This document shows, piece by piece, positions 9,999-43,698 of a stretch of 64,000 nucleotides of DNA; position 1 is the first letter of the stretch, and each line of letters opens with the position of its first letter. The position numbers and the translations under genes were made by a program. The notes below the pieces were generated by a model that was given only the letters and a program-made list of their open reading frames with translations, had not been told where the DNA came from and did no database searches. The DNA is taken from the NCBI GenBank assembly GCA_009103225.1, contig RHPI01000008.1:486015-550014 (forward strand), read 5' to 3'. This DNA comes from Chlorokybus atmophyticus (taxonomy: Eukaryota; Plantae; Mesostigma and Chlorokybus algae).

Positions 9999-11374
9999 CA
10001 AACAGTACGAGCGCTATACATAAAAATCTGAACAATTCACATTCACTACACCTATTATGATACAAACTCGATGCAATATGTGTATAGTAAAATACGCACC
10101 CATATGGACACTATATATAGATTGAGCTCGTTTACATGCTTTACTTATATATACAATGGTAATTCAGCATTAGTGAACATAAGACCTAAACTTATGTTTA
10201 CATATAATGTAATTGATTTATGCAGCACTTTATGCACCATGTGTTGTATAAGCTTATGTCTAACATTTCGTGGACATGCCAACATCGTTTTGTGTTTGAC
10301 CTTGCCCCATTTGTTGCACTATGCGTGACGAGGGTACACTGTTGGTTGGTGCACACGAAGGGCCATATTCAAAATACGCATCAACACGACATTATGCGAG
10401 TCGTATGATTAAGTGCGACGCATCAACAGCAAAGAGGTGGTGTTGATGTTAGCCTTCAATTAATGCTGTTTACATAGCATGGCCTATGTTGCGGCTATGC
10501 TTGTGGCACATATGATTTCACAATATACCACGAGCTTAGATCAGCTTATGCATGAGCTTAATACGGCATTGCATTGCACTTGCATTCATGTATTGTAAAG
10601 GAGTGCAAATCTGCACTCTTTTACAATATATATAACACATATGTATATGTATTGGGTTCAACAACATTAATAATACGGTGCTGCTTGTATCTGTGGTTAC
10701 ATGTCGCGTAGCATATCACATCTTTAACCCGAAGGCTTGGGTAAGCTTGTATGCTCTGCGTCACATAGGCCCTGGAATGCAAGCAGATACAAGGCAATAA
10801 TGAACATGTGTGTTGTACCACACACATACACTGCACGCAACCACCAAAGCTCAATTCTTTTTCACAATTCAGACGAACGAGCAAGCATGCGGTTGGCAAC
10901 ATCTACTATGCCTTTCAACACTACTCACACACACTACCACACGTACAAACACCTGATACCATTATTCAAAACTCAACATATGCGGGCGTCCGCCTGGACA
11001 CTCACAACATGCCTCCTAGCGCTACGTCCTTCTCCGTCGTCATAGGCTCAGTGTGTAGGGGTCCATAGCTGGGCATTGCATAAGCTCAAGCTATGCTGCT
11101 TGTGCATTTCAGTCCAATGGCATTGCCTTGTCAGTTCAAGTGGGCACTTGCGCGCTTGCTGATTAATATATCCAAGATGGACACCAACATATAAGACTCC
11201 GTAACACATTGGTTTCCAACATGGTTACGTATGCAGTGCTGTATGGTATCCATAACCGCACATGGATGTCATGTGACATCTTAGACCAAGACAAAGTTCA
11301 TCATTAAGGCTTCGTGGTTTGTCAGAATACTCACCTCCGTTAACATAGGTAGAAACACACAACTTGATGCAAGG

Positions 11375-11413
11375 GGCGTGTCGTGCGATCCGGGGGGACA
11401 ACTCGTGGACGGA
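11375..11413 (+). repeat. Left terminal inverted repeat
   Basis: ggcgtgtcgtgcgatccggggggacaactcgtggacgga, preceded by aagg. Confidence 0.92.
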
Positions 11414-14400
11414 GTTGTTCCCATATCATGTGATGTGATAGCAATCTGCAGACAACTAAACCACTTTGCTGGCCGCTTGACATCAGCAATCGCATGCAAT
11501 ACCAGCATGCAAGCAGGCAATCAGCAATGCATGTAGCTTTGTCTCTTGGATGTTGTTGAGTCTCTTTGCAGCTATTGAATGCCTTCAGGAGTGTAAGCCT
11601 CTCTGTTGTTGGCAAAATAACGTCAACTACTATGCATGAAGCTAGTGCCTCTTTGCAGCTACTTGTAGGCTTTCAGGAGTGTAGCTTCACCATTGTTGGC
11701 CAAGTAAAGCCAACCACAATTCATACAGCTAGGCCTACACTGTGATGATAATGAGCATGCACTCATGTGTGTGTTGGCAAAGTTCTGCCAACAGCTGCTT
11801 GTACAAGCAGATCAGAATTTGCACAAAACATTTATCTTTGTAACAAGGTCACAAGGCAGGGTACAAACTACTCCAAGGGTCAAGGCTGTATATACAGGGC
11901 AAATGCCTTTGTATCAGGGCACTATTCCAACCACTACACGCACATCACAACACGTTTTTTTTTTGCGGTGGGGGTACATCTCTTTTACTCCATGAGTTCT
12001 CCCTGGCTAGGTGTCTCCTGGCTGGCCATCACCGCCAAAGGACCAGAACACTTTCTGCAGCCGCGGTAGTCCTTGCATTTGTCACAGCCCCAAACATTCA
12101 GCGCGCCCTCAGTCTTACCAGCCTTGCGAACCTTGTTCACCCAGCTTTGCTTCAGCTTGTTGTCCTTGTTGGCCTCAACCCAATGATCTGGGCACCGGGC
12201 GTTGCTGCCATCCTTAGTCCCCGAGTAGGCTGTGAAGCAGAGATGATGTAAGCGGCGGAGACAGCCTTCACTGCGACACACCGTTGGGGTCGGATCGTCA
12301 AAACTGATTGGCATGTCGCAAAGCAGACTGGCGCAGTGCGGATGTGTGTCTGCCACTGGCACTTGCACTGGCTGTGGCGCTGGCTTCTCTGGCGTCGCCT
12401 GCGACACCGGCTCTGCATCTTTTTGGGTTGTTATCTCAACGTTGTGCGCAGGTTCTCTAGCTTTGTCGCTGGCTCCCTGATCATCTGTGATGAGCGAAAC
12501 CACCCGCGATGCCGAGTCTGGGTTGACATCCAGCTGAGTGAGCTTCCCTGCTAGCGGATCTGGAGTCGACTGCAATTCCGCTTCAAGCTTTAGGTAATTC
12601 GCACCGATAATATATACGCCCCTCACTTCGGTAAACTTGTCCACTGCGCACATGATCAAGTTAGCGAACATATGTGTGCTACAAACATACACAACACACT
12701 GCGCTTACTGCTTTGGATGTCAGCGCGGCGTTTATCACAGTAGTCCCTGATGTCCTTCAGCGTGTCTTCCTCGTCTTTTAAGATTGCAGCTGTGCCTGGT
12801 TGAGCAACCCAGCGCAGAAGAAACGCCATGTGCTTGACATCGCCGAAGTTCATGCTAGGAAAAAATTTTAGCAGGCGATCTTGCACGACCTCGTCCTTGC
12901 TCTTGATCCATGGCAGGGCAGCGGCTTTATCTTTAGCAGCAGCTGAGCGCAGTGAGCTATGCTTCTCTTGCTGCAACAAAAGGTGTTGCAGTAAAGTGAG
13001 TGATTTAAGTACCTCCAGATAGCATGACGCTGTTGGCAAAATTATACCAACACTCAGTGGCTTACGTAGTGCTTGAGTTCGCTGCAGTAGCCGTAGAAGC
13101 GGTCCTCGAGCTGGCACATGCTGGTGGAATCGTTGTCTACTGCAAAAATGCTATAGCCCAACTTGAGTGCATCGTCGCTCAGACCACCAGCTCCAGCACC
13201 GAGGTCGAGAACCCATATTTCGCTGTTGCTTTTTCTAGCGGGTAGAAAATTTCCGGCCAGGGTGCTGCACAGTCGTTGTTGCCAGCAGATAGGTGGATGA
13301 CCTTCAACACTGAAGAACTTGCTGAGCCACCAGCGCTTCACAGCTCCTGTGGCTGCCTTTATCATGCCTTCTGAAAAGTCAATCTCAGAGGGTGTTGCAG
13401 CAACGACAGCCAACAATTCATCTTCAGTTTCGCCCTCATTCATCTCGTTATCTTCCTCTGCTCCGTGTGAAGAAGACTTCAGCTCCTCCACGTTTGGCGA
13501 CTCTTCCTCGTATGGTCCCAGCTGGCAGAACTTAGGATGCGAGGGATCATGCCAGACAAAGTCATCCTGCTCGCGCAGCTTGAACCAGGTCTTGAGATTG
13601 GTGACCTTTAGAGAGTCGTCGACTTGCTTGTAAAGTGCAATGAGGACTGGCTCAGTCCGGTCTTGGCTCTTGTATAAGCCAGGGAACACTTGCAGCTCTG
13701 CGCAACATAACAGTTTTCAGTACTGTCGCTGTAATACCGAAAGGCAGTAACTGCACAGACACAACTTACTTGTAGCGGCGTGCGTATATGTAGTAAACTC
13801 GACGATATATGCATCGGAGTTTTGCAGGATTCCCTTGACCGCACTCACGTGATGCAAAGGTACAAAGGCTACAAGCGTCCACCACTTCAGTTCGCTGTTT
13901 TGGCGGCACAGTGCATCAGTTATTTCCTGGAAGTCTTCGATGGTGAAGGCCTTGTCGCGGTCATCGTTCTCTTGGAAAGGAACATCAAAGAAGACAAGCA
14001 ACAAGAGTACCCTTCCTTCCGACGGGAAGGAAGGGTACTCCTTGACTTGCAGCTCTCGAACAAATTTTTGCACAATTTGAAAGCGCGGTACGCATCTCTG
14101 TTTGACCGCATGGAACTCCTGGGGGCGATCGCCACTAGCGTGCACAGGAAAACGCCTGCGTAACAAGCATAGAGATATAGTATGGCTGCATTAAGCACCT
14201 GTTGGTAAAATTTGGACAACACAGCTCCATACTTACAAGGGCATAACCACGGCGCCGGGGACGTCGCCGACCTGATGGGGCTCTGGAAGCGGTATCTTGC
14301 CAAGCTGGCAGACTTTGTCCATGATGGCGAATGGGATATTCAGATGCTTGACTGAGTGCTTCGACTCTAAATCAGCTTTGACGCTTGTGAGCTGCTTGAA

Positions 14401-16822
14401 GATGAGGTTATGACCTCCCTTGAGAAGGACCTCAAACAGCTGGTTTCTGGCTGCATACAACTCTGGCGCCTGATCCGCTAAACGACTTTCACACCTGATG
14501 ACAGTGATGACTCTGTTGATACTGGTTACTGCTATACATACCTGCAATGAACAGACATAACTTTGCATGTGCTAGCTTACCCAGATGTTCCAAAGACCTC
14601 GCCTGGTATCACTTTACATGCCAAAAAAGACACAAAGCGTCCTTTGCGTTGCACATTTAGGTGGTAAGGCTTGAACTCACGATGCACGCTGACATCGATG
14701 GTGCCAGCTTCGATGTCATCCAACACCTTCATGATCTGCTCTCCTGATAGATGAGTGAACAGCTCCAAGGTGTGACGAGGCAATGGCTTGTTGATGTCAT
14801 CAACATCATCAAGGACTTGAAAAAAGCGTTCGTACTGCTCCTCAGTCAGTGGCAGTTTGACCGCCAGCCTGCATAGGTTGATGACGATGGCGAGAACAAC
14901 ACAACATTCTGCAGAGTCATAATGTACGCAAACAAAACTTACGCGATTTCAGTTCTATATTCTCTCGAAATCAGTTAGTTTCTGCCTTTCCACTTAATTT
15001 CATTGTCCATGAGCAAGGCCAGATCCAACAAGCAAGCCTTCCAGCCAGCTGAATACTTGTCTGAGCCTGGCCCAACTACTGGCTTGGCGGGTTTTCCGCG
15101 CGTGAAGTACTTGTCACGAAATGTGTCCACCTTGGTCAGAAATGTGGATGGCTTTTTGTGGTCATCTTGCTCGTTGTGCTGTCTAGCGTACAGATGGGCC
15201 TGCTCGTCGGTTAGCCCGGACACTACCTGTGCAGGGAACGAGATTCAGCTTGCTTTTTTTCGTTCAATTTTTGCAATGCAACAAGTGCTATAAGCTAGCA
15301 TACCTCACACCACTCAAACTGTAGCCAGTCATTATTTGGCTGCTCCTTGGCTAGCTTGGACGCGACGATGAACGAATGATTGCCGCCGAGCACCTCATAG
15401 GTGAAGTCTTTTGCGCGGTCGATGTGGTATTTATTGAAATACTCCTCCTTGACAGGCATCTCTCGTCCTTTGTCATTTCTGTAAGCCAGCAGAAGCCATG
15501 GCTTGTGCCCTTTATTGTAGCCGCTCCTCATAGCCTGTTCCAGATAGACCAGCCTGGATTTTTCAATTTTGCGCGCTTGATGTGCCCCCTCTGCTGGACG
15601 CATTCTTGACAGGCTGATTTTGTACGTATGTGTATCGACATTGGAGAACAGGTGCGGCAGTATAATGGGTGGCAGAGCATCGCCTGCACAGTCGGTAAAG
15701 TTTTGTCAACTTGTACATGCAGTGAGGCATTGTGTTCTGAAGACACTGCGTACCTGCTGCACCCTCCGTGTCTGCAGGGATGACCAGTTTAGTCTTTGGT
15801 GCTTTGCCCTTGCCTCTTTTGTTTGGCGACGGCAGCTGAGAGGGATCAGCACTCAAGTTGAGCGTCTTTGCTGTCATTGCTGCAGCAATTGATAAATCGT
15901 CAGGATGTTTTGGAGCGGGGTTTGGTGGGAAGTACAGCACATAGTGAACGTACCTTGCAGAGACTCATACAGATTGACAAGCGATGGTGGATTATTAGCC
16001 TTGATGACGTCCTTGATCATCATGTCGGAAAGATCCTTGCCGTTCTCTAGACTGACCAGCTTTTTCCCGGTGGGTGTCCAATGGGCTTTATTTACCGGCA
16101 AATCAAACAGGAAGGTCTTGCGATCGGTAAGAAACTCGTCATCTGGGTCTGGCACGCTCGATGGGATGACAAGCACTCGGACTTCCTTTGGTGAGAAAGA
16201 CCATGCATATATGAGACGATACTCGGACTGGTGATCGTTCTGCAACAAACAAGGAATTGATCAACTATCTTTGAGAATAGTAAACAACCAGCGTTAACAG
16301 ACGACATGACTGACCTCTTTTGTGACTGTCAGATAGTAACGCACAGTCTTCTGCTTATCTTTGATCTCAGTTTTTTCTTTTGCAGCCTCCCACTTGGCGA
16401 GATTGTGTATTTTTTAAGCAGCTCCTTTGAACAGCTCGCGTAGATCTTCAAGCTCTTCGAACTTCTTCCAGAAGGAGCCATGCCTGACATGGATCGTGTT
16501 CCCTGCAGTTACATGTATTGTTACTAAAAGTTCTGCTACAACTATAGCAGGAAGTCCGTCAACAAAGTTACAGTGGTAGTCTCCTTTGTCCAGAGCTTTG
16601 TCTTCGTCGTTAAGCTCGTCATATTGATCTGACTCATCGCCAGAGTCAAGATCGGGATTGCTCTGTTTGTCGTCCGTCTCAGGTACACTGTCATCGTCGT
16701 TATCGTTATCGGAGACTTCTCTTTGAGGGGCTCGCAACTTATCTTTGAGGGGATCACTGCATTAGCAAGAAGTATAGAACAATTGTTTCAGTAAGTAATT
16801 TTGGCAGCAAAGCCTGAGACCA

Positions 16823-16990
16823 GTTGGCAAAATTTGGCCAACACGCAAGAGCAGGCAGACTAACAGCCCTGCTAGCTGCTCTTGCTCGTTGGCAAAATTT
16901 GGCCAACATGCAAGAGCAGGAAAACCAACAGCTATATGCTGGTTGCTTTTGCTTGTTGGCAAAATTTGGCCAACACGCAAGAGCAGGCAG
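16823..16990. repeat. Three tandem 65-67-bp units in intron 2 of the cargo gene
   Basis: Core gttggcaaaatttggccaacaYgcaagagcagg at 16823, 16888 and 16955; the intervening sequences resemble each other. Confidence 0.9.
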
Positions 16991-17374
16991 ATCAACAGCC
17001 CTGATGGCGGCTCCATTAGAGAACAGCGAGCCCCTCTCGATATAAGAATATTCTGTACACAGCGCTGGCCTTGATACGGTAGATTCTTTTAACAAGTTTG
17101 TAGACCAGCGGTAGCCCAGCAGCAATGCAGCCAGCAGCAATGCAACTGATCAGCATACTTACAAAAAGCCAGCCCGCTTCTTCTTTGCCTCCTTGGCACG
17201 GCTGCTGCTGGCCTCCGCTTTGCGTTTGATGCCGCTCGCCCTTGTGTTTCTGCAGAGCCACAAAATGTTAGTGATTGTCTACTTCAGCTGCAACAACCAT
17301 TAACAACGCGAAAGCATAGTGCAATGCATGAAGACCCCAACACTAACTCGTGCACACAGTCAACTGTTGCACAC

Positions 17375-17805
17375 ATGTTGCGGAATTGCCAGCAGCACCG
17401 CGTGTCCATGCTGTGATGTTGGCAATTCGGCTGCACCACATGCACCAGCAGCTGTATGCAGCTCTGTCTAGCAAAACATATGCGTGCTGCGTGCTTGCGA
17501 CAACATGTACAAAGCATACACCAATCTGAATTTGTCAAGTTGTCAAGCAGCAGCGAACAGGCATGTTGTTAGCAGCAACATGCATGTCCGTGCTGCTGGC
17601 AACTCTGCTGCAATTAATACAACAAGTTGTGAGCAGCAGTGAACAGCAGAAGGGTTCAATTACAAACCAATTACAAACCCAGGCATTGCTACTTGACAAC
17701 TCTGCTGCATTGAACAAGTTGTCAAGCAGCAACGGACATGCATGTTGCCGCAGAATTGCCAGCAGCACGGACATGCATGTTTGTGCTGCTGGCAACTCTG
17801 CTAGA
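17375..17805. repeat. Fold-back repeat cluster in intron 1 of the cargo gene
   Basis: Module gcagaattgccagcagcac(gg)acatgcatgt occurs in both orientations; 19-bp-stem hairpin with one mismatch at 17750-17801. Confidence 0.75.
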
Positions 17806-18099
17806 AGACGTTAGTAGTAGCTGATGCTTTGGAACAGTTGTGCATAGCAACTTCTGCTGTCTAAAGCTGCAACAGCTAACAACCAAGCTGCTACGCAACA
17901 AAGCTAAAAAGCTTAACAACTCACCTTATTGTCGTCGTTTCCTCGGTGGCTTGACTGGCCTCCTTCTGGCTGTCCTTCGCAGCTTTTCGCTTGGGTCGCC
18001 CCATCATTGCTCACCGCCCGCACCTCGCCCCCGTCGCCCACGCCGCCGTCGCCGTCGCCCACGCCGCCGTCGCCGCCGCTGTCACCGACCACAGCACCG

Positions 18100-18640
18100 T
18101 ATTTCTGATGCAATGAAGAGTCTATTTCTCATTTCATGTTATATTAACATCATTTGCACAAGCTGCATGTGACATACCAGGGTGCTACGTAATGACCTTC
18201 GCCAAATACCCCCAAACTTTTGTTCGTAATAACAATTGCATCGGTTGATTATTCTGCATGAGTTTTTTTGCAACGTGCTCCAGCTGCAATAAAGACTTTA
18301 TGTGCCAAGTGTTATGTTAATTGGAACTCATGTGCAAGAGTTTTATATCCTACCCTACGGGTGTTACGCGCAAGCCAAAATTGGGTGCCTACTTGTGTGG
18401 TGCCCAAGTTGCGTGAGGCAGGCATGCAAAGTTGCAAACGTGTGCTGTGAGCTGAGCAATGCATGTGTACTAGTGCGTGTTGCTGCCAGAGGTGTTGAGC
18501 CTTGGGTTGATGGTGTGGGAGGGGTAGCTTGGCATACACGGTGTGCAACAGCGAGTTGGGGAGTGGGGAGGAACCCTAAGCATGCTACCAGCAGCTTCGG
18601 AGCTAGCTGAGCTTCTGCTTGCATGCTAGCTTACTCTGCG
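18100..18640. promoter_or_regulatory. Probable bidirectional promoter of the transposon
   Basis: Lies between the divergent cargo and transposase genes. GC-rich ggcggc/ggcgac leader-like tracts point outward on both sides (18020-18090 on -, 18645-18700 on +). Confidence 0.4.
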
Positions 18641-19811
18641 ACTACGGCGACGGCGGGCGTGGCGGCGGGGGCGGCGGCGAGGGCGGCGGGTCAGCTGGGT
18701 CGTCTTTGCCAGGCTAGAGTAGTGCGTTTCTCCTTTGCTTAGTCACAATGTAGGCGGTGGCGCCACAATGCTGGCTGCTGGCTAGGCGGTTGAGAGAGCT
18801 GGCGCTGGGCTGGTGAGAACTGCATGGATCAGGTGCGTTTTATGCTGCATGAAGGCAGGTCCAGCTGTGTGTGAGAGCTGGTGAGCAACGTGAATGCTAG
18901 CATCCACATACGAACCATATGTCAAGATGTTCAGCTGCTGTACACGTCCGCTGCTTGTGCAGTCATATTATGCTGCTGCGCTTAGGCAGGTCCAGGCAGG
19001 TCCGCTGTTTGTTTGTTGCCAATTGAAAGCAAGGTAGGTGTGAGGTAGGCATGTGTTTTTGCTATGTGTGTGTAGGCTTTGTTGAACGCAATTGCAAGTG
19101 GTGCCGCTACATGCAGTGCTGTAGTGACGCATTGCTGTGTGCGCAGTTGTTGCGTCTACATTTGTGATTTCGAAGGGTGCGACAACAAGCAGCGGAGTAT
19201 GCTATCGTTCAACAACGGCCGCATGGCGGCTGGCTATGGTGCATAGTCAAAGCCAGAGGTATGGCACCACCAGTCTCTTGCACTGTGCATTGCATGCTGT
19301 CTGTGTCCATATATGCGCTAGAAGGTTTCAAAGTTGGCAAAATGGGTCATAACGCATGCTGCAAACAAGGGTTGTGCCATATGTTCTGTGCACGTCAGCG
19401 TCATCAAAGTTGGCAAAATTTACCAACTAGCGTTTTGGCCTACTGGCAAATGTACTAACTTCGCGGACTTGAGCTTAAGGCTTTGATAGAGCGTGCCGCA
19501 AGATGGTGACCCCGTCTTGTTTGGAGTCGATAGCATGGCATAGCCTTTGTTGTTGTTGGATAAACTTTGCCAACAACTGCGATGATACCTGCATCAGCGC
19601 ACAATACAACATCTCCTCTTGCCCGCACTGCCCGTGTTGTTGGATGAATCTAGCCTCAAGTTAGGTCAGCTATTTTGGCGGTCAAACCAGCACAGCCTGT
19701 GTTGTTGGTAAAGTTTTGCCATCTCCTGGCAGGTCCGCGAATAATGGGTCCCAGTCTCAACGCGGACAACAAAGAGCAAAGGAATACCGGGTCAAGCAGT
19801 CAGTTGCCGCC

Positions 19812-22607
19812 ATGCAGGAGGTACTAGAACAGACCTGTCAAGGAGATGACACCATCAAAGCAGACATTCTGAGATCCCTGCTGAAAGCACCCAAGAATGC
19901 AGCAGCCGTCGCTCAAGATAGCTATTTGGAAGTCGTCAAAAGAGCTCCTGCCTACAGAACGATATCCAACATGTTCAAGTCGGCATACAACAGCATCAAC
20001 AGCTCCCGCTCCAATGCGCATAGAACGGCAAGGAATGTTCTGATGAAAGCGGCAAGATCAGCAATTGGCGACAACAGGTCGGTGCGAATTTCGGAGGTTG
20101 CTTCAGTGCTCAAGATACGTCGTCAAAGGTTTTATCAAGAAGTAACGTACCTGCACGACTGGAGCACTCGAGGGCGTCGTGCACGCAAAGACAAGGTGAC
20201 ACCGCAGATATGTCAACAGATCGAGGACTTTTGGATCCTCAACACCAGAGAGTCTGCATGCAAGCGTGATAAGATGTTGTTGCGTATGTCCACTGGTAAA
20301 CGATTAGCTAGCGAGTATGTCACCAAGCATTCTTTAGAAGGCACGACACAAACGGCACTGTACTTGAAGTTCCGAGCTGAGAACCCACTTATCGACGTGC
20401 ATCAACGAGTTTTTAAGAAGGTCAAGCCATACTATGTAGGAGGACGCGACGTTCGGCATGTGTGCGTATGTTCGCAGCATACTGAGATGAAAGAGCTTGT
20501 GATGGCTTTGTCTCAGTTCCGGCAGAGAAAGCACGCGCATTGTAAATGCCCATGCGATGCGTGTCAGGTATGAATGTTACGGTAAGAGCTTGTGTAAATC
20601 AAAGCTATGCATCTGGTAACAGCCGTGCATGTAGGTCAAAAAAGACTGCACTTGCCGACACCGCTGCAGATGTCAACTTTACACCAAGTGCCGTTTGCTG
20701 GACTCACCACTGTCGGGTTCATCGGTCACCGGCCTGCTTGACTGTACTTCTTGCACTAAGGAAACGGACAGCACTTACTACAACCACCTCTGCATCACTG
20801 GAGACTGCCCTCACTGCGGATGGATTAAGTTCCCGACATGTCCATTAGAGCGATCAGAAAAGCATCAGTTGCTACAGCCTAGGCTCTACGTAAAGCGCAT
20901 GCAGCCAGGCAAAGCGGAGAACGGTGAAGCCACCGAGTACGCAAGAGTAGACTTTCTCAAGCAGCCCATGACCTTTGTTGACTTTATCAGCCGCCTGCAG
21001 AAGCAGCTGAAGGACTTCAAGCTCCATTCGTTCTTGTCGCAGTGGCAAGCGGAGCAGCAAAGGCAGTGCTTACAGACCTTCTGTCAAGGCACGATCGTCA
21101 GCATCAGTGATTTCTCCGAAAATTACGCTTTGAAGCCAAACAACGAGCTCATGCAGCAGCATTTTGCAAACCGCTCCGTGGTGATCTTGGTGCAACTCAT
21201 CTACCGTCACGCTGAAGAGCATGTAGATGGTGAGACATCGACAGACGACCAGCCGATGCGCGTCAAAGAGGTACGCTCATAAGCCTGCTTGTTGGCATGG
21301 TTTTACCAACAGATCAACACGATCATCAGCGGCTTACCGGGTTTTACATTGCAGGTTCATTTTTGGATATCGGATGATCTTCAAAAAGACTCCTTCTTTG
21401 TTCACCATTGCTTGAAACGGCTTCTCAGAGACTACAGAGAGAGAGGGATAGACATGCAAAAGGTCATCAGCTGGAGTGACAACTGTGCAGTCCAGTATAA
21501 GTGTGCCAACCATTTTGCGCAAGTTGCTCAATACAGCGCTCCGGCAGCTTATATGACATCCATACATACAGAAGCAAACGAGTTGAACACCGTTCATATG
21601 GAATGGCATTATCCTTGCCCGCAACATGGCAAGGGTGAACATGGCGGTCAAGGAGGGACACTGAAACGGCACCTGGATAGGGCCAGCGAGCAAAGTGCTG
21701 AAATAGTGGATGCTGCAACTATAATTCAGTACGCGCAACAGGTGCTTAGCCGAGGAGCCGAGTCATCATACGCAGCCCGTGAAGAGCAAGACAAAGCTCA
21801 GAAGCGGTTTGTGCATCTTGTTGAGCTCCATGAAGTAGATCATGACAAGACAGGGCGCTCCTATCGCTCAGTACCAGGCACTCAACAATTTCAATGCATA
21901 AAAGGAACCGGAGAAGTTGAACGATTTATCTCGCGAAGGTTTTCATGCTTCTGCAGCAGCTGCCTAGACGAAGATTACAGCCATTGCCTGAACAAGTCTC
22001 ACGTTCCTAGATGGCTACGACAAAAGCTGATTGCAAGCGAGGAAGACGGAGAAGAGATTGAGCAAGATGTGAGTGCTAGGCTTATGCGTTGGGTTGAGCA
22101 TTGTTATCTAACTTGTGCTATGTGCAGTTGCTATACTTAAACCAGGAGGCGCTGGCGCTTTCCTTGAGCGTCGGAGACACATTTGTGGTGGCTGCGGATA
22201 AGAGCTCCGATGAATATGAGGCCTCTGCACCTTATTGGGTTTTGCAATTGACTAAACAAGTCGCCACGAGTAAATCCACGGCTATGCGGCCCGACGCTTA
22301 TGGAGTCATCATACCTGCAGACACACTATACGTCACAGGAGTCTACTTCCGCAGAGTTGATGACTCGATTGTGACAGCGGCAGAATATCCCAGGAGGTAC
22401 CTATGTTTCCTACCGCCTCAGCCACAAAAGCCTGCCAGATTATCGGTTAGCCTGTTGAGGTGCGTAGCACGTTTTCCGATGGAACGAGAGAGCCGAAAGC
22501 AGAAGCAAGAGAGATTCAACTCGTCCAGAATGACATGGAAAAAGATCAAGGAGTCTGTCTTTGTAATTCCCGACAAGTATCATGAGATGATTTTAGATGT
22601 GCTGTAA
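19812..22607 (+). CDS. Sola2-type DDD transposase, about 861 aa, third catalytic Asp apparently mutated to Gly
   Basis: Exons 19812-20567, 20635-21270, 21355-22068, 22128-22607 join in frame. Motifs: CVCSQH, Cys-rich cluster, SDFSENY, SDDLQKD, WSDNCAVQYK, HGKGEHGGQGGTLKR, RRFSCFCSSC. Two extra 5' exons (18824-18832, 19176-19258, joining at about 19732) are possible. Confidence 0.85.
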
Positions 22608-23043
22608 TAGCTTACATGATCACACACAGTGTCAAAAGCACAGTCGAACAGTTGACTAGATTTGTGTGTTTGTTCATTGTGACCTCCACACTGTTGGCTC
22701 ATCGTGGCCAACTACGGCAGCAAGTGCATGTTGCCACTTCCGCGTAAGACATGCCTTTCAAGACATATGAGGCATGATGTTGGCAAAACTTATACAACAT
22801 CACTACTCACACAACCCTCCTTGAACATAAGAAATTGCACCCTTTATGTGCATTAGTTGGCAAGATAATTCCAACTTCACGATTCACACAACCCTTGTTA
22901 GACACGTGCAATTGTAACCTTTATGTGCAGCAGTTGGCAAAGTTTCTGCAACATGTTTGCGCAACTGTTGTCAAACGTTTTCCAACAAGGTGGTACCTGT
23001 TGTCTCAAGAATCAAGAATAACATGCGATGTGTCAACAACATT

Positions 23044-23082
23044 TCCGTCCACGAGTTGTCCCCCCGGATCGTGCGACACGCC
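23044..23082 (-). repeat. Right terminal inverted repeat
   Basis: tccgtccacgagttgtccccccggatcgtgcgacacgcc, followed by aagg. Confidence 0.92.
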
Positions 23083-24780
23083 AAGGCTGTAACTAGTAGT
23101 CAATCTCACTACACGAGCATGCTTGACGCCAAGATTGTATGCACGCATTGCTGTCTACACCCAAACATCCGACCAAATTATCACAGTAGCTGGTAGGTAG
23201 CAGGCGCATGCCCCTACCTTTGTGCAGGTAATCTGGCACATCAATCCTAATTGCCACTGCCTACTTGCACGCACTTAGGTAGCAGCCCCCTAAATGTAGC
23301 TAGCTAGCTGTGTGCTGCGTGTTGTGGTGTGTTATTGCCTTCATTGTTGTTGCCTTGCTGCTGGTTGACATTATTGCCTCTGGCCTCTGTGCTATACCCT
23401 ATGCCTTAGCCCGGTGGTCAAGTTAGTGAGTGGTTGTTGTGGTTGTGCATTGCATACGGTATAGCAAAGGGGCCAATACTATGATACACTAGTATGCAAC
23501 ATCGTCACACCAAGCTACGTACTGTCATCCCTGCCTATTACTGCACAAGCATACTCACACGCATGCCAGCGGCCAATAGTGTAGCACACAGCAACAAGCC
23601 AGCATAACATCGATAAACACCAAGCAACCAGCGAACTAGCTTAACATAGCTACGGGGGCTGGACCTATGTGCTCAGCAAGGCTTACAATGCCAACCAACA
23701 AATTGAACGGAGAAGCAGCAGCAGCAGCGCAGCGCATTTACCTACACAGCACGGGGGAGACAAGCAGAGGGAGAAGGAGAGAAGTCAGCCCTTGACCTAC
23801 ACCAGTGTAGACAGGACCGACGTGCTCGACCAGGCCCCAGCCGCCACAGTGCGCCACTATGGTTTCTTATACCCTCCTGCTGTAAGGAGTCACAATACGG
23901 CTGTTGGCATTGCCGGTGCCAATGTATTCGTGGCGAGCAGAGCATGTCACAGCCATATGCATACATCACACAACTCACAACAGCCAGCGAACGAGACCTA
24001 ATACATGTGGGCATGTGAAGCTGTATGCTCCCCACCGTTTACACGTTGTGCGTGATTACAGCAGTTGCAATACAATGATACCAATGCCTGCATGTATCAT
24101 CAAATACATAACCTGGTCGTGTCCACATGACCGAGCGTAATCTTGATTGTAGTGGCCTGCGCTGGTACCTCATGGCTTGCATGTCAAGCAACAAGGAATG
24201 ACCTCAGTCGCGAAATCGTGCATGTGGACGCAGATTTGCATGTACGAATTCCGCCTTGCATGTTTTGCACACCACATCACACAACGCAATGCAGCCGTCT
24301 CCGCAAAGCGGACATCTATGCGAGGGCTGCGTCCGCTTCTGTGGTCGGGGGGCCGATAGTTGATGGCAATATCATGGAAGAGACATACCCGAACAACAAA
24401 CATACTAAGCAACACAGCCGCGCTGCAGCTTTTTGCATGGAACTACTAGATGTTTGATTAGACAATAATGCACACTAGCTTGTAAGAACAGCATCTGCAC
24501 TGCCTGTCACACTATCAACCACGACCACCAACTGCAGCCCTTGACATACAAATCTCTAAAATAGCACAGTATGCGTCTCTATACTGCACCTGTGCAAGCT
24601 AACACGCCAACTGGAACCTTCGCTTTCAATGTGTTAGCAACTGCATGGAAAATGCCTGGTGACATGGTATAAATGAGCACTACGCTATGCATGATACTAA
24701 CCCCTTAGTCAGAATCTATGCACAGGTGATTTGTACAAGAAGGAGCCCTATCCTTCATGGTTTTATATAAGCCGCTCTCA

Positions 24781-26975
24781 TCAGGCCGTAGAAAAGAGTC
24801 CATCACCTGATCATTGCATGTCATGTAATGTCAGTTGGCATACACATAGTTGTGTGCGCTCACCTGCGCATGCTAACCCACCAAACAGAAGCGATCGAAT
24901 CATAAGAGCATACCTGCTTCTTCCTTGGGTTGTGGCGTGGGCGAGTTTTTCCTTGACAGGTTATGAATGACAGCAGAAGAAAATACCGAGTTGGGAACAA
25001 ACACAGGGACGTTGTCGTCCTTAATTATGCGCGTGTGATATATGCCAATGTTTTCAACAACTCCGCAAAGGGACCCGTTATTGATTTCAATCCTGTCACA
25101 AGGAATCATGACACTAATCAATCGCTGTGTTACGCAATTATGCATGTACACAAGCATGCATGGGCGTAAAGGTTTCCGCACGCGCGCACTAAAATGCACA
25201 TGCGCATCTCTGAGCACGGGTGTGACACGCAAACGCCTGCACACGCACACGCAAAAGCTGTACCTTTCGCTCTCGAGGAAAGGTCTGGTGATGAGCATCA
25301 TCAGTCCGGAGACCAGGTTGGACACAACGCTCTGCGAGGCGAGGCCGATGGCCAGGCCGCCCACGCCGCCAAATGCGAGGAGGGCACGCGTCTCGACGCC
25401 GAGCAAATCCATTGCCACGAGCGTCGAAATGACATATGTGGTATATGTCCCCAGCTTCAATAGCAGCCGCCGCGTTGATTGCTGCGTTATAAACTGCGAG
25501 TGACCGCCCAACGCCGCCTGCACATGACCACAAAACCAAGTCACGCTCTCTGTCGCTCTGCCAGTGTTGAAGCAAGTACACGTTGTGTTGATCATCTCTC
25601 ACCTTTTGCACGCGTATGCTTATCCATGCGAAGCATGCCACAGCGGCAACTTGGCAGGCTTTGACTGTGACTGCTTGCAGTTGCAATGCCTGCAAGCAAG
25701 TGCATAAGTGGCATTGTTGTTAGCACCGGCATGGCAAGCAACACAATGACTTACAACTGTTACCTCTGCTCGGTCGGCCCACGGCAACATGTGCACGACG
25801 TGCTCCCCGAGGATGTTTATGCCCTTCACCGCGCCCACGACCCACACCAACACCGAAAGCGGCACCCTCAAAGCCTCTGCCAATGCCATATGCGTATGTC
25901 AGCAGAGAAGCTCAGTTTGAACTTGCATGCAGAATGCGTTTCATCACAAAACTCGTGTCGTTCTGTGCAATCAAAGACCCAACATGCGTGCGTACCAACA
26001 AAGTCGTCCACGCCACCGGGTTTGCCGTCCTCGAGCCTTCGAGCGATGGTGTCGAGGACGCGCTCGGTGAGAATCGCAAAGAGCCCCGCCACCACGACCT
26101 CCAGCGCCATACTCGCCAGCGGGATAGCCCACGCCAACTCGGGGTACTGTAACTTACACTCAGTAAGTTGGTGACCGTGACGGTGATGGTGGTCGAAGAT
26201 TATATGTGCGCATGCACATGTGCATATACACATGGGCATACACGCTTGCATGCGCGTGTATGCAAAGTCTTCAAGCACACGCAGATGGGTGGGTATGAAT
26301 GCAAGTGTAGCAGGTGCATTGTTTTACGCGAGGCAGCCCTGTGAGGGTGGCGGTGTTGTTTTACTGTCTGTCTTGCACGTCAGTACGCCAGCTGTCACAT
26401 ACAACCGTGTGGTTGCACAACCAGGCTGTTTGCAACAGTCCACATGCATGTTAGAGGGTTCAATAGTGCTGCAGGGTTTTCTGACGCACAGAACCATGGG
26501 TGACCAACATGAAGCTAAGTGTACTGCGCGGGTGCATGAACATCCCGTGCCGAACATGCACGCTCAACTTGTGAAGACTTGAACTGTTGTCTTGCTGCTG
26601 CAAGCTGCACCATCCGAACCGACAAGCACATGCAAAGCAGGGAGGACACTGCCACTGCCGGAAGCTCACCTTGCGCATGAAGTCAGCCACGGGTCTATAC
26701 AAGATCCCCGGCGTGAAGCTGCCCGCAGCCGCCACCTGCGCAATGCAACCCGAGGCGGAGGCGGAGGCGGAGGCAGAAAAGGAGGGTGAGGCGACAGGCT
26801 GCCTCCGCCGCCTGAAGGCGCTGCTGCTGTTGCTTCCGAGCCATTCCTGCCGCAGCACCAGCTTCCCACGCTCAGCAGCCGTACACGGCGGCAAGAACCG
26901 ACTGCCTGAACGTGACAGACTGCATGAACCAGGCGACGGTAAGGACACCGCCGCCGCCGCCAACGACACCGCCAT
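24781..26975 (-). CDS. MSL: MscS-like mechanosensitive ion channel with organellar transit peptide
   Basis: Ser/Arg-rich N-terminus, several TM exons, and MscS core LLAFGGVGGLAIGLASQSVVSNLVSGLMMLITRPF...GVVENIGIYHTRI..VFVPNSVF..IHNLSR. Last exon GDGLFSTA* with TGA at 24781-24783. Confidence 0.85.
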
Positions 26976-27561: not shown

Positions 27562-29903
27562 ATGGGTGCATGGCTCAAACACTCTGCCAGCAGGCGCAGG
27601 ATGAGCAGCAAGATGCACCGGACAGCCACGTCCGCCTTAACGACATCATGGCTGCTGTTGCTGTGTCTCGCCACCTCCATCTCAGCCACACCACTCTCCT
27701 CCACCCTCTCCTCCTCTCCCTCCTCCTTGTCGGCTTGCAAGGCGTTGCAAGCTACGCTAGCTGAGCCATCCGACCTTCAGTGCGATCGCGACCCCCCCGC
27801 GCCGTGCATGCTGATGGGCGCCATGCATGACAACGCGTCGGTGCACGACTACGCGCGGTGCAGAGTGACGCCTGAAGTCAGAGACTGGTGGTGAGTGTTG
27901 GGGGGTGACTCTGTCTATCACATCATATGGGTGTCGCATCGTTTAGTGTGAGACTGCTTGATGCAGTAATACGAGACCCAAGTGTCGGTGTAGCCATACT
28001 CGATCAGCATGAGTCGGTGCAGCTGCATCTGCCAAGGGTATGGCTGTGGGTGTGGGTGGGAGGGTGGGTATAAGGGTGGGAGAACTTGATTTGGATGAGG
28101 AGCCGGTGCATGCAGGGGTGGGTGCGTTGCGCTTGCTGTCTTCCATGCAGCATTAGATACTTTGTTGTGGTCGCACAGCACATGCAAGCTGCCAGAAAGT
28201 CCATGCAACCCGCTGATATCCAACATGCAATCACATGAACCTACCTACCCTCTAGACCCACGCTTGAAGTAGGCGAGTGCTGGCGGTGAGGACGACAATG
28301 TAGGCAGCATCCGCTGCGCTCAGTGTGATTCAGTGTGTGGTGGGATGTGATGACGTGTGTGCGTGCGGTGGTGGCGTGCCGTGGGAGCACAGTGACATGA
28401 TGGTGCGGTGTGTGGTAGCGAGCAACCAAGGCAGCATCATATCAATGTACATGTGCTTTTGTAGTACAGTCCTCTAAACCCATATGCCTGCGCCAAAGCA
28501 CAAGATACTGCCTGTCCTTAAGTGCTCACTGTATGTGTGCACACGCGCGCGCGCATGCGTGCACGCGTGTGTGTGCGCGTGCGTGTTTTGCACCTCATCG
28601 CTTACTACTGCACTCTGCATGGTGAGTCCCTAGGCCTGTGAGGGATTCGCATGTGACCGAGGAGGATGATGCTGTTGGAGATCGCGTGGGTGCAATGAAG
28701 CGAGTAGCTGCGCTCGTCGGAAATCACACTGTTGTATTTGTTGGCGACAGCATTTCATATCAGGTAAACATGTCGAGCAGTGAGCATGACGCATTGAAAA
28801 TATTTGCGCGTGCAATCTGCATCGTCACGGATGTGCAGAACTATTACTCGCTAATGTGCGGGCTCGCGCGTGCCGGAGACATGGCATACCCCAGCCAGCT
28901 GACAGATGCAGCTCGAAAGGCAAAGACCTTGGTTTATGAAGCTGGTGCAGCATTTGCTCAGGTGACACCTATGAGCCTTGCCTGCAAGTTCATGGAAACG
29001 ATTCTTGCATAGCTGATATATGACAGGTTTGTGTTGAACATGCAGTTGCAAGTGTCAGCACAGTATGGCACTATTTTCCTGTTTGGGCGGGAGTCAGTGT
29101 ATGACAAGGAGAAGATGGCCAAGTACATGGCGCTTGCGGACGTGTTGGTTGTGAACTTTGGGCTGCACTACAACGAGAATCGTGCGAGGGAGTTCTACGA
29201 TGCGGTGGCCTCCCTCAAGGAACAGCTGTTGGACTTCGTGCTCGGCGGGAACGGCACAAAGGTGGCAATAGTGAGGGAGGTGAGCGCGCAGCACTTCCCG
29301 CACTCAGGCACTTACAACGCCTCGGACACGTCTCACCAGGCCACCGGCTGCACGTGCGAGCGCATGCGGGAAGACATAGCTTTTAACAACCATGTCACGC
29401 GCCAGAATGAGGCCCTCAGGAGTATGGTTGCCAACATAAAAAACCCTCGCCTACAGCTGCTGCCCTTCTACAATCTCACCAATGCTGGCCACGATATGCA
29501 CGTGCAGGACTGCAGCAAAGACCGCATCGCCGACGGGGGTGGCTGCTGCGACTGTACGCACTACTGCTACACGCCAGAGTTCTGGGACTTGGTTGCCGCG
29601 GAGCTGTACAGCAAGCTTGCATCCGCACTGAGTGTTGGGAATGTCACTAGCAAAGCTGCTGAGGCACCTGCTGAGTTATCAACAAGAGGGGTATCAACAC
29701 CGGGAGCCGAGACACCTGCTGAGATGATGTCATCGTTGCCTGCTGCTCAGGCACCTGCTGAGGTATTACCACCAGCTCAGGCTCTGCTTAGGGCAGAGTC
29801 CCCGGCTGATGGTTTAAAGAAGGTTGTGGACCACTTTGAGGAGCGGCGGCGGGCTGCAAGGTCGAGGCTTTACGCTAGCGGATTCTTTCATACCAAGTCG
29901 TAG
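27562..29903 (+). CDS. TBL/PC-esterase (SGNH-like) polysaccharide O-acyltransferase-like protein
   Basis: N-terminal hydrophobic anchor (SWLLLLCLATSISA), VVFVGDS motif, VVNFGLHY and terminal DCTHYC (DxxH). Internal exons at 27900-28400 are not fully resolved. Confidence 0.75.
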
Positions 29904-38323: not shown

Positions 38324-39593
38324 CAGAAACAAACGAACAGGTTGTACTTGATGCTTGAAATCATTGACTGTGACTATGAGCACATTGCATGAGTGCAACA
38401 ACTGGTTATGCACAAGCTTGAGTTGCATATATCATCGTATTACCACCTCTTCTGATACATCGGTCAAGATGGGATTGCTCCCTGACCAGATGCCACAATG
38501 CACCCTATTGCGTGTCCAGAGTATCAGATGATGTGCAGTGCACAAGACACTAGAGTACAGGCAGGTCCCTTGAACACAATATCTGCCAACAGTTGTAGTG
38601 GCCGGAAACTTGCACATGTAAAGCATATTTCAGTATTGATTTCTCAACGTTAATCAACTGGGGTTTGATATGTAGTGTACAGAATATGCAAGTGACGTAT
38701 GCAATGTGATACATAAGCAAAACTGAGTGTCGTTAAACAGCAGTTCGGCGGCTTGCACAATATTCAGATCGTATGTGCAATTGTGAGAGCTCCTAGACAA
38801 CACATATGGGGTATTGATGAGGAAAAAAAAGGCAATGCCTTGAATAAGCACTACTCATACATGACCTGAGCATGATGAGCACATAGACAGATGTGCGCAT
38901 GATATACGGATTTCGCCGTCAATTTCAACAACATATAATATGTGCTGTTGAATTTGTATTGATCATGATAACACATAACATCATAAGAAAACATATGTAA
39001 AGTAGCGGGGCTGTTGTTGTGGACACGTGTTTGCATTGCACTGACATAGCTTCATTTCACTCCACACGCTACAAGTACAACAGCTTATCATGTGACATGC
39101 GATGAAATGTTGTATGCAACACGTATATCAACGTGTGTAAGACACAACGACCGAAGAGCCGTGAGCTAGGGCAAGATAGATGGGATTACACACAGCAGGG
39201 CAAAGGCAGCAAACCACACAGCAGCAACAACACGGAATGGGCCCTCTATGCTATCTATGTGCGCTATGTCTCTCGTAAGCACGACGTAGTCACATTTGCA
39301 GCATAATTGTATCTCTTTGTGTTACGCACAAAATATGAAAATTGAGTTAACCGTGGAAAGAGTTACGCAAGAAAAGCATTGGCTTCATCAACACTTATAT
39401 CCATTGTGAATACTATGCATGCCAAGTTGTAAGACATTTGCAATTCAATTGCATGAAGACATTTATCATGTTTTTTACATCAATCTTGTTGACTTATCAT
39501 ACCGTATTGATCGAAACATTGTATTCAATAAGCAACAGTTCATTGTTTGACCCATTTAGAACTATTTCTTGTACGGGGGAAAGGGGGGGAAAG

Positions 39594-39865
39594 NNNNNNN
39601 NNNNNNNNNNNNNNNNNNNNNNNNNNNNNNNNNNNNNNNNNNNNNNNNNNNNNNNNNNNNNNNNNNNNNNNNNNNNNNNNNNNNNNNNNNNNNNNNNNNN
39701 NNNNNNNNNNNNNNNNNNNNNNNNNNNNNNNNNNNNNNNNNNNNNNNNNNNNNNNNNNNNNNNNNNNNNNNNNNNNNNNNNNNNNNNNNNNNNNNNNNNN
39801 NNNNNNNNNNNNNNNNNNNNNNNNNNNNNNNNNNNNNNNNNNNNNNNNNNNNNNNNNNNNNNNNN
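39594..39865. other. Assembly gap (N run) followed by (GA)n microsatellite at 39866-39898
   Basis: 272 N; a G-rich purine tract precedes it and a GA repeat follows it. Confidence 0.98.
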
Positions 39866-39900
<35 letters not shown>

Positions 39901-40080
39901 GTCATAGCTTGAACTACCGGTAGCCCATAATGCAAGCATGTGTTAATTTGCCGATAGTGCCGCGTGTGCTCACGCGTGGTCATGCGCGGAACTTTGAGTG
40001 ACCGTGCCGTAACAGCCAGCGGGTAGTGCACCAGAGACAACACCGCGGCGGAGGCAGAGGCTGCAAGGAGGAGGGCGGCA

Positions 40081-41642
40081 ATGGAGTGTCCCGCGGGCAG
40101 CGACTGCACCGATAACGTCTGCGAGCTGCTGCACAAGTCGGACGCTGAGCGTTCGGCTGACTTCAAGCCTCTAAATGGCAAGTGTAATCCTTTCAGAAGT
40201 CCTTTGCTGTAGCTTAATGCTGACTGCCGCTGAGGCTGATGTGTGCCGCGCAGCATGCGCCTTAACTGCAATGCGGCTTTGAGCAGCTGTTGACATGCTT
40301 GAGGCATGCTACCTACAGCGTTCTTACGACAGTTTCCTGTGTGTGGGCGCACAGGGCCAGGCATGCTGATTGTCTGCGCTGGGCCAGAAAGATCAGGTGC
40401 GTGTTGCTGTTGTTGTCGTGGTTGTTGTGGTTGTGGTTGCTCGGCTGGTGCTACCCTTAAGGCATTGGCCGAGTGCGTCATTTTTCGTTTGCTGTCACGC
40501 TTGAGTGCCTTTCTGAGTACGCTCGCCATTGCAATGTGGTTGATGGTTGTTTGCATTGCGATGAGGCAGGCTCGACGTGGCTGTTCAACGCGGTGCGCCT
40601 CATGCTTTTTGCCGCAAGCCAGCCGACAGACAGCTACTGGCTCAACGCCGTCAAGAAGGACAAGCTTGCTGAGCGCGGTTTCGGCAAAGCCGGTTCCAGT
40701 CATCTACTCATAAAGGTTAGTCTTGCTACTCACTGACACTGAATCACCCTCATGTGACACTACACTGCCTGATTAGGGCACATATGACTGTGCAGATGAC
40801 CAGAGAGAGTGTGGGAAGAGAGAGAGGGAGAGCGTGCTTGGGAGAATATGAAAACATCAAGCTGTGCATGAGTGCATTGCATGGGCGTATGCTGAGCGCA
40901 TGAGTGTGTTCTGCTGTGCTGCTGACCAGACACATGAGTGGTCGGAGGACTGGGACCCACAAGCCGCCCAAGCCGTTATCCTTACTCACCGTGAGCTAAC
41001 CGGCGTGGCTTCTTCTTATGTGCGCATGGGTTGGTGGCCCAACTCTCTCCCTACCATCCTCGAGGTATGGACATGCATCATTATCATCATCTTCAATGTT
41101 GTCATTGTCATTGCACAGCGACATTTTCACCAAGTGTGTAAGAATCCATATGAACACTGTCATGTGCGTGTGCAGAAGCTGCAGCACTATGTTGAGGGCC
41201 ACAAGCACTGGCACGCCGTGGCCTCGCATGAGGTGCCTTTCACTAGTCTGTCGGACAAAGCAAAAACCCGTGAGCAGTTGGAGGAGATTGCTTCGCTGCT
41301 TAACATCACCGGCGTAGACTTTGACAAGTTGGCGGATGACCTCAACAACCTGCCCTCACCCAAGGGTGAGATGTACATTACAAACACAATACAAGCACCA
41401 GCGCTGTTAATGTTGTGTACATACCGTTGACAGTGGACTCATGCTGTGGTGTATTGTCATTGTCTTGTTGCTCTGGGTTTGGCGTAGGTTCTGCACCGGA
41501 TCCCATCACGAAGATGTGGCCCGGTCACGCCGGTGGCAAGGGAGGAGGCGGTGGCGGAGGCAAGTTGTCCGATGAGGACTGCGCAGCCATCCGGCGGGAA
41601 TGCAAGGAGTTTCAAGCCGAGTATGGTTACCCCACAGAGTAA
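40081..41642 (+). CDS. Sulfotransferase-fold protein with N-terminal CCCH finger (copy 2, tandem paralog)
   Basis: MECPAGSDCTDNVCELLH; LIVCAGPERS|GSTWLFNAVRLML; THEWS; SSYVRMGWWP; PDPITKMWPGH; YGYPTE*. Colinear with copy 1. Confidence 0.8.
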
Positions 41643-43314: not shown

Positions 43315-43698
43315 ATCCGTGACAACTAGGATAGCCGCTGTGGATTGCAGTTATTGTTGGCAGCGTTGCGTAGGTTATCAAGGTGCTGCTTACGCATACA
43401 CGACGGCTGCCACACAGGTAGTGCGTCGTTTGCTGCTATTTTGTCGTCAATGTCGTCGTCAGTTGACGCCGCCCCTGCTGCCGCTGCTTGCACTTAATTT
43501 GCATTAGGCCCTTAGCCAGCCCTCTGGTGTATATAGTTATGTATTTATTGCTATTGCTTGTTTGCTGGCTTGGTTTGGGTGTGCAACTGCATCAGCATTG
43601 TTGCAAATGTGTGGCACAGCCTAGTAGGCCAATACAATCAGGCACCGCAGTGAGCATATCGAGAGTTAAAGCAGCTAGCTACCGCCATCCCCTCCCCC

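Follow-up and report, generated by a model that had tools for sequence, protein, structure and literature searches.

Giant DNA transposons with ParB-like and methyltransferase-type accessory genes are a recently recognised pattern in algae, and cargo-bearing elements of the Sola group are already known: Sola2 elements with Fanzor1 and an Ectocarpus Sola1 element with a ParB-methyltransferase gene have been described, and certain Plavaka elements of red algae are similar. Here we describe a green-lineage Sola2 case that adds to this pattern, an 11.7-kb element at positions 11375-23082 of a 64-kb stretch of the Chlorokybus atmophyticus genome (assembly GCA_009103225.1, contig RHPI01000008.1, positions 486,015 to 550,014; the whole stretch of 64,000 nucleotides (nt) is called the window below, and all coordinates refer to it). 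The element has a Sola2-type transposase gene and, on the opposite strand, a long accessory gene, hereafter the cargo gene. Taken as a whole, the locus is in our judgement quite probably a structurally complete, decayed Sola2 copy of a cargo-carrying family, the second gene of which combines a ParB-like, a methyltransferase-motif and a finger region. As a single defective copy it is of modest interest alone, and its value lies in the family.

Among the described systems, the curated element Sola2-1_Ec32 has termini of the form GGCGG..CCGCC, a 26-bp imperfect terminal inverted repeat (TIR) and a 4-bp target-site duplication (TSD) (PMC12477816). The Chlorokybus element resembles it in the length of the TSD, in its termini (GGCGTG..CACGCC), in having imperfect TIRs of tens of base pairs and in two transposase blocks, which read TDGCAKQYK and HFKGSHDG in the reference and SDNCAVQYK and HGKGEHGG in the window. 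On the other hand, Sola2-1_Ec32 is 4.6 kb long, has no reported accessory gene and keeps the third catalytic Asp, whereas the 11.7-kb Chlorokybus element contains a second gene of 6 kb. The Sola2-Fanzor1 elements of dictyostelids (DFa-1/2/3 and PPa-1/4/5; Bao and Jurka 2013, PMC3627910) share with it the Sola2 transposase, the 4-bp TSD and a comparable size of 10-15 kb with a second large gene; they differ in carrying a TnpB-like Fanzor1 nuclease as cargo and in having TIRs of 12-22 bp and AT-rich TSDs (PMC3627910).

Further parallels come from outside the Sola2 superfamily. Sola1-1_Ec32 of Ectocarpus, which is 21.5 kb long, carries an opposite-strand gene for a 1104-amino acid (aa) protein with ParB-like and N4-cytosine/N6-adenine (N4C/N6A) methyltransferase parts, and its authors propose that this protein binds and marks the element's own DNA (PMC12477816). 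Both it and the Chlorokybus element are giant Sola-group TIR elements in which an accessory gene of more than 1000 aa lies opposite the transposase, and the ParB-like and methyltransferase parts would be common to both if the putative domains of the Chlorokybus protein are what they seem; Sola1-1_Ec32 differs in its Sola1 transposase motifs, its 282-bp TIRs and AACCG termini, and no PHD-like finger is mentioned for it. In the red alga Bostrychia, Plavaka elements carry the accessory genes PAG2 and PAG3, which comprise a ParB-like plus 2-oxoglutarate (2OG) oxygenase gene and an N6-adenine methylase plus SET gene (bioRxiv 10.1101/2025.02.11.637652). These are likewise giant DNA transposons in which a ParB-like or N6-adenine methylase part is joined to chromatin-type domains, and inverted-repeat arrays beside the ParB-like gene have been proposed as its binding sites (bioRxiv 10.1101/2025.02.11.637652); their transposase is, however, of the Plavaka/CACTA type, and the ParB and methylase parts are in two separate genes. 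A first-pass annotation of the window, made from its letters, had presented the locus as a cargo-carrying Sola2 lineage. The second gene does lie inside the TIRs, but the novelty was overrated, as Sola elements with cargo, including an opposite-strand ParB-methyltransferase, had already been published.

The transposon and its transposase

The element takes up 18% of the window. Its left TIR (11375-11419, plus strand) begins with GGCGTG and its right TIR (23038-23082, minus strand) finishes with CACGCC. The two pair over 45 nt at 91% complementarity, with a 39-bp core in which the two mismatches are at adjacent positions within the first 38 nt. Even with up to three mismatches allowed, the whole window contains only these two copies of the terminus, where none is expected by chance. 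The same four bases, AAGG, stand at both termini (11371-11374 on the left and 23083-23086 directly adjoining the right terminus), and the TSD thus has the 4-bp length reported for Sola2 (PMC3627910). A longer TIR would require a C immediately beyond the right terminus; the base there is A, so that the repeat stops at this point and the duplication is unambiguous. The 39-bp TIRs and the AAGG duplication, which had been read from the sequence at the outset, were both recovered, as were the two divergent multi-exon genes inside, namely the transposase gene with 4 exons on the plus strand and the cargo gene with 14 exons on the minus strand, with GT-AG junctions throughout.

The transposase gene (19812-22607, plus strand) has exons at 19812-20567, 20635-21270, 21355-22068 and 22128-22607, separated by introns of 59-84 nt. 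From its start at GCCGCCATG the spliced frame runs without an internal stop and yields exactly the 861 aa that had been announced. Residues 125-823 align with an intronless 721-aa homologue (expectation value (E) 9e-67), and the four-exon model is validated by this homologue, since the alignment crosses the exon 2/3 junction continuously, with no gap. Exon 3, searched exhaustively with HMMER, returned 619 proteins at E<0.001, including a Klebsormidium transcript and sea-urchin proteins labelled 'uncharacterized', the top match having 38% identity. No family name is carried by the transposase homologues, and Pfam has no model for this transposase. A word-indexed protein search with exon 3 gave no match and deserves little weight, as its length filter omits full-length relatives; a scan of viral contigs with the transposase alignment gave no match either. 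At the exon 1/2 junction (20544-20700, residues ~245-275) the protein has a Cys-rich insert, HCKCPCDACQVKKDCTCRHRCRCQ, which the closest intronless homologue lacks and which may be partly intronic or a lineage-specific zinc-binding insert.

The superfamily can be read from the conserved blocks of this protein, which are SDFSENY, VHFWISDDL..HHCLK, WSDNCAVQYK and HGKGEHGG. Those of Sola2_DFa-2 are MDFKEN, HFDVFSDVL..H.IK, WSDGAKHFK and HGKSDVD (PMC3627910 supplement), and those of Sola2-1_Ec32 include VDFIEKF, TDGCAKQYK and HFKGSHDG (PMC12477816 supplement). The generalised blocks DFxEN, HFxxxSDxL...H.[IL]K, [ST]DxxxxQ/H[YF]K and HGK[GS]xxD follow one another as they do in the two Sola2 references, with similar spacing, and the motif set of the Sola1-1_Ec32 reference (DGANQ, DN..ENKN, HTH..IDQ) is unrelated. 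Judged by these sequence features, the element is by descent a cut-and-paste transposon of the Sola2 superfamily with an Asp-Asp-Asp (DDD) transposase. The Sola2-type identity that had been proposed is upheld by the motif order, the 4-bp TSD, the GGCG termini shared with Sola2-1_Ec32 and the unmatched Sola1 reference. The accompanying remark set the GGC..GCC termini against a GRG usually quoted for Sola2, but they are not odd, because the curated Sola2-1_Ec32 is listed with GGCGG..CCGCC, so that GGCGTG..CACGCC is normal for the superfamily.

The catalytic core has nevertheless been damaged. The motifs DFxENY, SDxCxxQYK and HGKGxxDGxGG had been quoted as typical of Sola2 DDD transposases, and the first two are present as DFSENY and SWSDNCAVQYK, but the third reads HGKGEHGGQGG, without the Asp; the corresponding stretch is HGKGEHDS or HGKGEHDG in the nearest homologues. 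When the catalytic core was aligned with 144 homologues in MAFFT, D411 and D506 proved to be conserved, and the window protein keeps both. Residue 561, where the third catalytic Asp should stand, falls in a column with Asp in 142 of the homologues, one Ala and one gap; the window protein has Gly there (codon GGC, 21643-21645, plus strand). The DDD triad is incomplete at this third position, which concerns the activity of the copy and not its descent. The element, which had been called complete, is so in its structure but not in its genes, as the transposase has lost its third catalytic Asp and a premature stop interrupts the cargo model.

The cargo gene and its product

The cargo gene (11985-18007, minus strand) is located within the single TIR pair, on the strand opposite to the transposase. 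The model consists of 1334 codons in 14 exons, of which exons 1-7 are at 18007-17925, 17249-17163, 16756-16489, 16392-16315, 16239-15954, 15879-15754 and 15593-15304, and exons 8-14 at 15226-14943, 14868-14581, 14512-14237, 14155-13770, 13697-13066, 12970-12709 and 12643-11985. All junctions are GT-AG, the 4005 nt are in frame with one internal stop, and 10 of the 13 introns measure 65-96 nt, near the sizes of the transposase introns. The stop, an in-frame TAA at codon 490 (14975-14977), would cut the product after its ParB-like part.

A contig from a public sequencing run gives a second copy for comparison. Three extra bases in it abolish the TAA at 14975-14977, but that copy has a stop of its own at codon 484 (14995), six codons upstream. 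Over the cargo exons the two copies differ by 11 non-synonymous and 3 synonymous substitutions, and this ratio, together with the separate stops, fits copies that decay independently and neutrally. Exon 11 of the window copy contains a perfect hairpin of 16+16 nt with a 4-nt loop (14005-14040), just before the VFFDVPF strand described below. Since the public-run contig is without 24 nt (from 13999) adjoining it, it appears to be a palindromic duplication that only some copies possess. The hairpin encodes 'EYPSFPSEGRVL'.

The N-terminus of the predicted product is basic and is accompanied by an acidic stretch, after which come a domain with the motif YEVLGGNHSF and then SGLTDEQAHLYARQHNEQ, and a long middle part. 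A beta-alpha-beta region with VFFDVPF is next, then an acidic insert, the motif VLDLGAGAGG...FAVDND and, at the C-terminal end, a Cys/His cross-brace finger. The best-supported part, with moderate confidence, is the putative ParB-N-like or DUF3723-like domain of exon 7 (15304-15593, minus strand; YEVLGGNHSF at 15399-15370), which was recognised by its protein-language-model neighbours. These were an unnamed eukaryotic cluster (0.95, 185 shared features), DUF3723 (0.94, 178) and ParB_N (0.89, 132). The structure neighbours of the DUF3723 representative include ParB_N proteins at template-modelling (TM) scores of 0.46-0.50, among them phage fusions of ParB_N with N6_N4_Mtase. Searches of Pfam, NCBIfam, PHROG and PADLOC with this domain gave no match. 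Fungal DUF3723 proteins, which are among the nearest neighbours of exon 7, are accessory genes of Starships, which are also giant eukaryotic transposons (bioRxiv 10.1101/2021.12.13.472469; PMC9156397); there is, however, no sequence-level match to PF12520, and Starships use a tyrosine recombinase and not a DDD transposase.

The methyltransferase-like region spans exons 11-12 (13066-14155, minus strand), with VFFDVPF at 13995-13975, VLDLGAGAGG at 13212-13183 and FAVDND at 13146-13129. The profile matches of exon 12 are all sub-threshold and all fall on residues 154-200, that is, on the 45 residues of S-adenosylmethionine (SAM)-binding motifs I-II; they are to Methyltransf_25 (E 0.005) and to Erm, PrmA and type II methyltransferase (MTase) profiles (E 0.01-0.2). 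In the weak PADLOC type II MTase match, motif I falls at positions 231-276 of a 302-position profile. The candidate for the catalytic motif reads DVPF and not (D/N/S)PP(Y/F). By eye, a beta4-like strand with DVPF is followed by alpha/beta repeats, an insert and motif I at the C-terminal end, an order that would fit the permuted arrangement of N6A/N4C methylases. Exon 11 with its DVPF matched no profile; its best language-model score was an uninformative 0.58, and Cas2 matches appeared at chance level only. Sequence searches of the PDB with exons 11 and 12 likewise gave chance-level matches only, tblastn of the same two exons against 50,697 phage records gave none, and viral-contig scans with the cargo exons found no relative. 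Word-indexed protein searches with exons 12 and 7 gave no match, and again the omission of full-length relatives by the length filter leaves them little weight. Taken together, these matches give a weak hint of a methyltransferase.

ParB-fused Dam-type methylases have been listed in certain chlorophytes and chytrids (Iyer et al. 2016, PMC4738411). The PF02195+PF01555 fusions of phages and chlorophytes resemble the layout proposed for the cargo product in that an N-terminal ParB-type module precedes an amino-methyltransferase (PMC4738411), whereas the cargo exons have no detectable similarity to phage genomes, to Pfam ParB_N or to N6_N4_Mtase. The initial statement that the cargo is a DNA-modifying enzyme was therefore too strong, as it comes down to a sub-threshold SAM-binding motif and to motifs read by eye, and no match was obtained to a DNA-methyltransferase profile, a phage protein or a solved structure.

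Towards the C-terminus, a candidate PHD/RING-like finger (12180-12338, minus strand) has the pattern C-x4-C-x13-C-x4-C-x4-H-x2-C-x14-C-x2-H, and a second knuckle, C-x2-C-x5-C-x2-C (12092-12048, minus strand), can be read from the model. The profile matches of the finger, to zf-RING-like (E 0.0065) and PHD_NSD (E 0.18), are below the cut-off; with the Cys/His pattern they weakly suggest a PHD-like fold.

A palindrome confined to the element

With one mismatch allowed, the window contains 17 matches to the motif GTTGG-N10-CCAAC, against 2.75 expected, and 16 of the 17 sites are inside the element. The 20-bp palindrome reads TGTTGGCAAAnTTTnnCCAACA. The 16 sites extend from 11608 to 22986, and all are non-coding, with none in an exon. 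Three are in the left subterminal region (11562-11793; palindromes at 11608, 11695 and 11773), which includes two 87-bp tandem units (11562-11736), and five are in the right subterminal region (22693-22986; palindromes at 22693, 22779, 22856, 22933 and 22967), where they stand in repeats of ~77 bp. One lies in intron 2 of the transposase gene and five in cargo introns, among which intron 2 contains a tandem array of 2.8 units of 67 bp (16823-17003) with the palindrome TGTTGGCAAAATTTGGCCAACA in each unit. The divergent intergenic region between the two genes (18008-19811), which is also marked by GC-rich inverted repeats, holds two more sites and one with a 9-base spacer (19409, 19555 and 19704).

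As the palindrome is specific to the element and occurs in both genes and at both ends, and as there is a single TIR pair, we argue from the sequence that the cargo gene is probably an old and integral part of the element. The palindromes are putative binding sites of the transposase, of the ParB-like protein or of both, and the 20-bp sequence is a concrete candidate binding motif.

Some further features of these repeats may be recorded. Every site, both ends of the element included, has its GGCAAA half on the plus strand, which is unusual for subterminal transposase sites. The inner TIR (11375-11419) holds a small palindrome, ACAACTC-N7-GAGTTGT, with the CAAC/GTTG half-sites of the internal palindromes in the opposite arrangement. 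In the intergenic region, imperfect GC-rich inverted repeats of 46 nt (18030-18075 and 18645-18690, 80%), made of CGG/GCC-type short repeats, flank ~570 bp of divergent promoter region.

Competing explanations and genomic context

In the explanation that we prefer, a Sola2-family element would carry, besides its transposase, a long opposite-strand accessory gene for a protein with a ParB-N-like (DUF3723-like) domain of a DNA-binding or nuclease type, a SAM-binding methyltransferase-motif region and a PHD/RING-like zinc finger, and the palindromes of the subterminal regions, the shared promoter region and the introns would serve as its likely protein-binding sites. The copy in the window would have been inserted at an AAGG site and have decayed thereafter, and with Gly561 it could move only with a transposase supplied by another copy. 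In this account the boundaries, the gene models, the family relationship, both lesions and the enrichment of the palindrome come from direct observation, and the role of the accessory protein and the identity of whatever binds the palindromes are inferred. It is probably non-autonomous and decaying, because Gly replaces the third Asp and the cargo has an in-frame stop. Neither an intact active site nor a trace of recent movement is seen, position 561 being Gly and the window, in which the flanks are unique, containing no second copy and no empty site.

Several observations weigh against this explanation or parts of it. The Sola2 match is a comparison of motif blocks by eye with Sola2 and Sola1 references. 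A weaker, phase-compatible donor at ~15043 (GAC AA|GTATTC), upstream of the stop, would skip codon 490 if used, so that the truncation of the cargo product is likely but not certain. The public-run contigs are short, DNA-like and free of splice joints, and the cargo exons are models, especially exons 1-4 and the 9/10 junction. PF01555 (N6_N4_Mtase) was unmatched by the cargo exons searched singly, none of the cargo exons had a counterpart among DNA-methyltransferase profiles, phage proteins, solved structures or PHROGs, and no cargo homologue was found in protein, viral-contig or metagenome-locus searches. Single-sequence AlphaFold models of exons 11 and 12 alone were unusable, with predicted local distance difference test (pLDDT) scores of 47 and 31.

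The stop-skipping donor also figures in the opposite proposal, that the copy is autonomous and active, Gly561 being tolerated or an assembly error. Apart from the cargo stop, both frames are open and their splice sites are canonical, and the TIRs and TSD are well preserved. However, the donor would create an intron of 175 nt, where 10 of the 13 cargo introns are 65-96 nt long and the normal donor at 14942, with the consensus GTAAGT, gives 74 nt; Asp occupies the residue 561 column in 142 of 144 homologues, and the differences between the two copies look neutral. We consider an active copy improbable. Domesticated transposases typically have lost a catalytic residue while the rest of their frame is intact, and the 861-aa frame shows just this, with finger and methyltransferase-like parts in its neighbour that suggest chromatin work; the locus might accordingly be a host-co-opted pair of genes, a catalytically dead transposase and a chromatin-type partner, that is no longer a transposon. 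Against such a history, which we regard as very improbable, neither the TIRs nor the TSD are damaged, a premature stop interrupts the partner gene, and the substitutions relative to the second copy are mostly non-synonymous.

Least credible of all is that the minus-strand gene is a host gene that happens to lie between two separate elements, or the result of a single capture. Metagenome contigs of JGI and ENA frequently encode Sola2-like transposases, with at least 383 confirmed stretches, many of them from a few projects (Ga0181537, Ga0233334 to Ga0233351 and OFE* records). Eighty of these stretches, with transposase relatives at 22-33% identity, were surveyed for cargo, together with two look-up loci of close transposase homologues. 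None of the 80 metagenomic loci, most of them on contigs of only 3-10 kb, and neither look-up locus, where the contexts are too short to show cargo, had cargo-like sequence in the flanks. The cargo is thus not general in the superfamily, a point in favour of such a capture, and on this survey it appears to be lineage-specific and not a Sola2 trait. Yet there is one TIR pair with no internal termini, and the element-specific palindrome is found in the cargo introns, in the transposase intron and at both ends. The attribution of the second gene to the element, and not to a host gene between two elements, agrees with the original proposal, which the single TIR pair and the palindrome in the introns of both genes and in both subterminal regions support.

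The function of the accessory protein is where the preferred explanation meets its most serious competitor. The protein may methylate protein, RNA or a small molecule, or it may contain a degenerate Rossmann domain that binds SAM or DNA only; we give this somewhat less than an even chance. The only profile matches are to generic class I motifs I-II (Methyltransf_25, Erm, PrmA, UbiG), the putative catalytic motif is DVPF where (D/N/S)PP(Y/F) would be expected, and PF01555 is unmatched. A DNA methyltransferase is favoured, on the other hand, by the order seen by eye, which is the permuted order of the N6A/N4C methylases fused to ParB in phages, by the ParB-methylase fusion of the Ectocarpus Sola1-1 element, and by the position of motif I near the end of the weakly matched type II MTase profile of PADLOC. 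At its most far-reaching, the decayed-copy explanation could be extended to a joint reading, which we think unlikely. The intact accessory protein would dock on the ~16 palindromes through its ParB-like domain and methylate the transposon's own DNA (N6-methyladenine or N4-methylcytosine, 6mA/4mC) or read chromatin through its PHD-like finger, and this self-written epigenetic mark would control expression or evade host silencing, a strategy that Sola1, Sola2 and Plavaka would have gained independently in brown, red and green-lineage algae.

Elsewhere in the window, open reading frames (ORFs) of host type are found. About 1.8 kb from the element lies an ORF for an MscS-like mechanosensitive channel of an ordinary host type (24903-25595, minus strand; E 2e-11), and further away are a PC-esterase-like ORF (29031-29900, plus strand; E 3e-4, below the cut-off) and one with a metallo-beta-lactamase fold (60888-61898, plus strand; E 3e-7). 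The MscS-like and PC-esterase-like neighbours, like the Klebsormidium transcript among the transposase homologues, are in keeping with an alga of the green lineage. Three AT-rich islands (39001-40000, 43001-45000 and 56001-57000) have a GC content of 0.32-0.41, compared with ~0.5 elsewhere. ORFs of 387 aa (39543-40703, minus strand) and 258 aa (43488-44261, plus strand) at the first two of them have no Pfam match, and the same is true of a further 258-aa ORF at 48343-49116 (minus strand).

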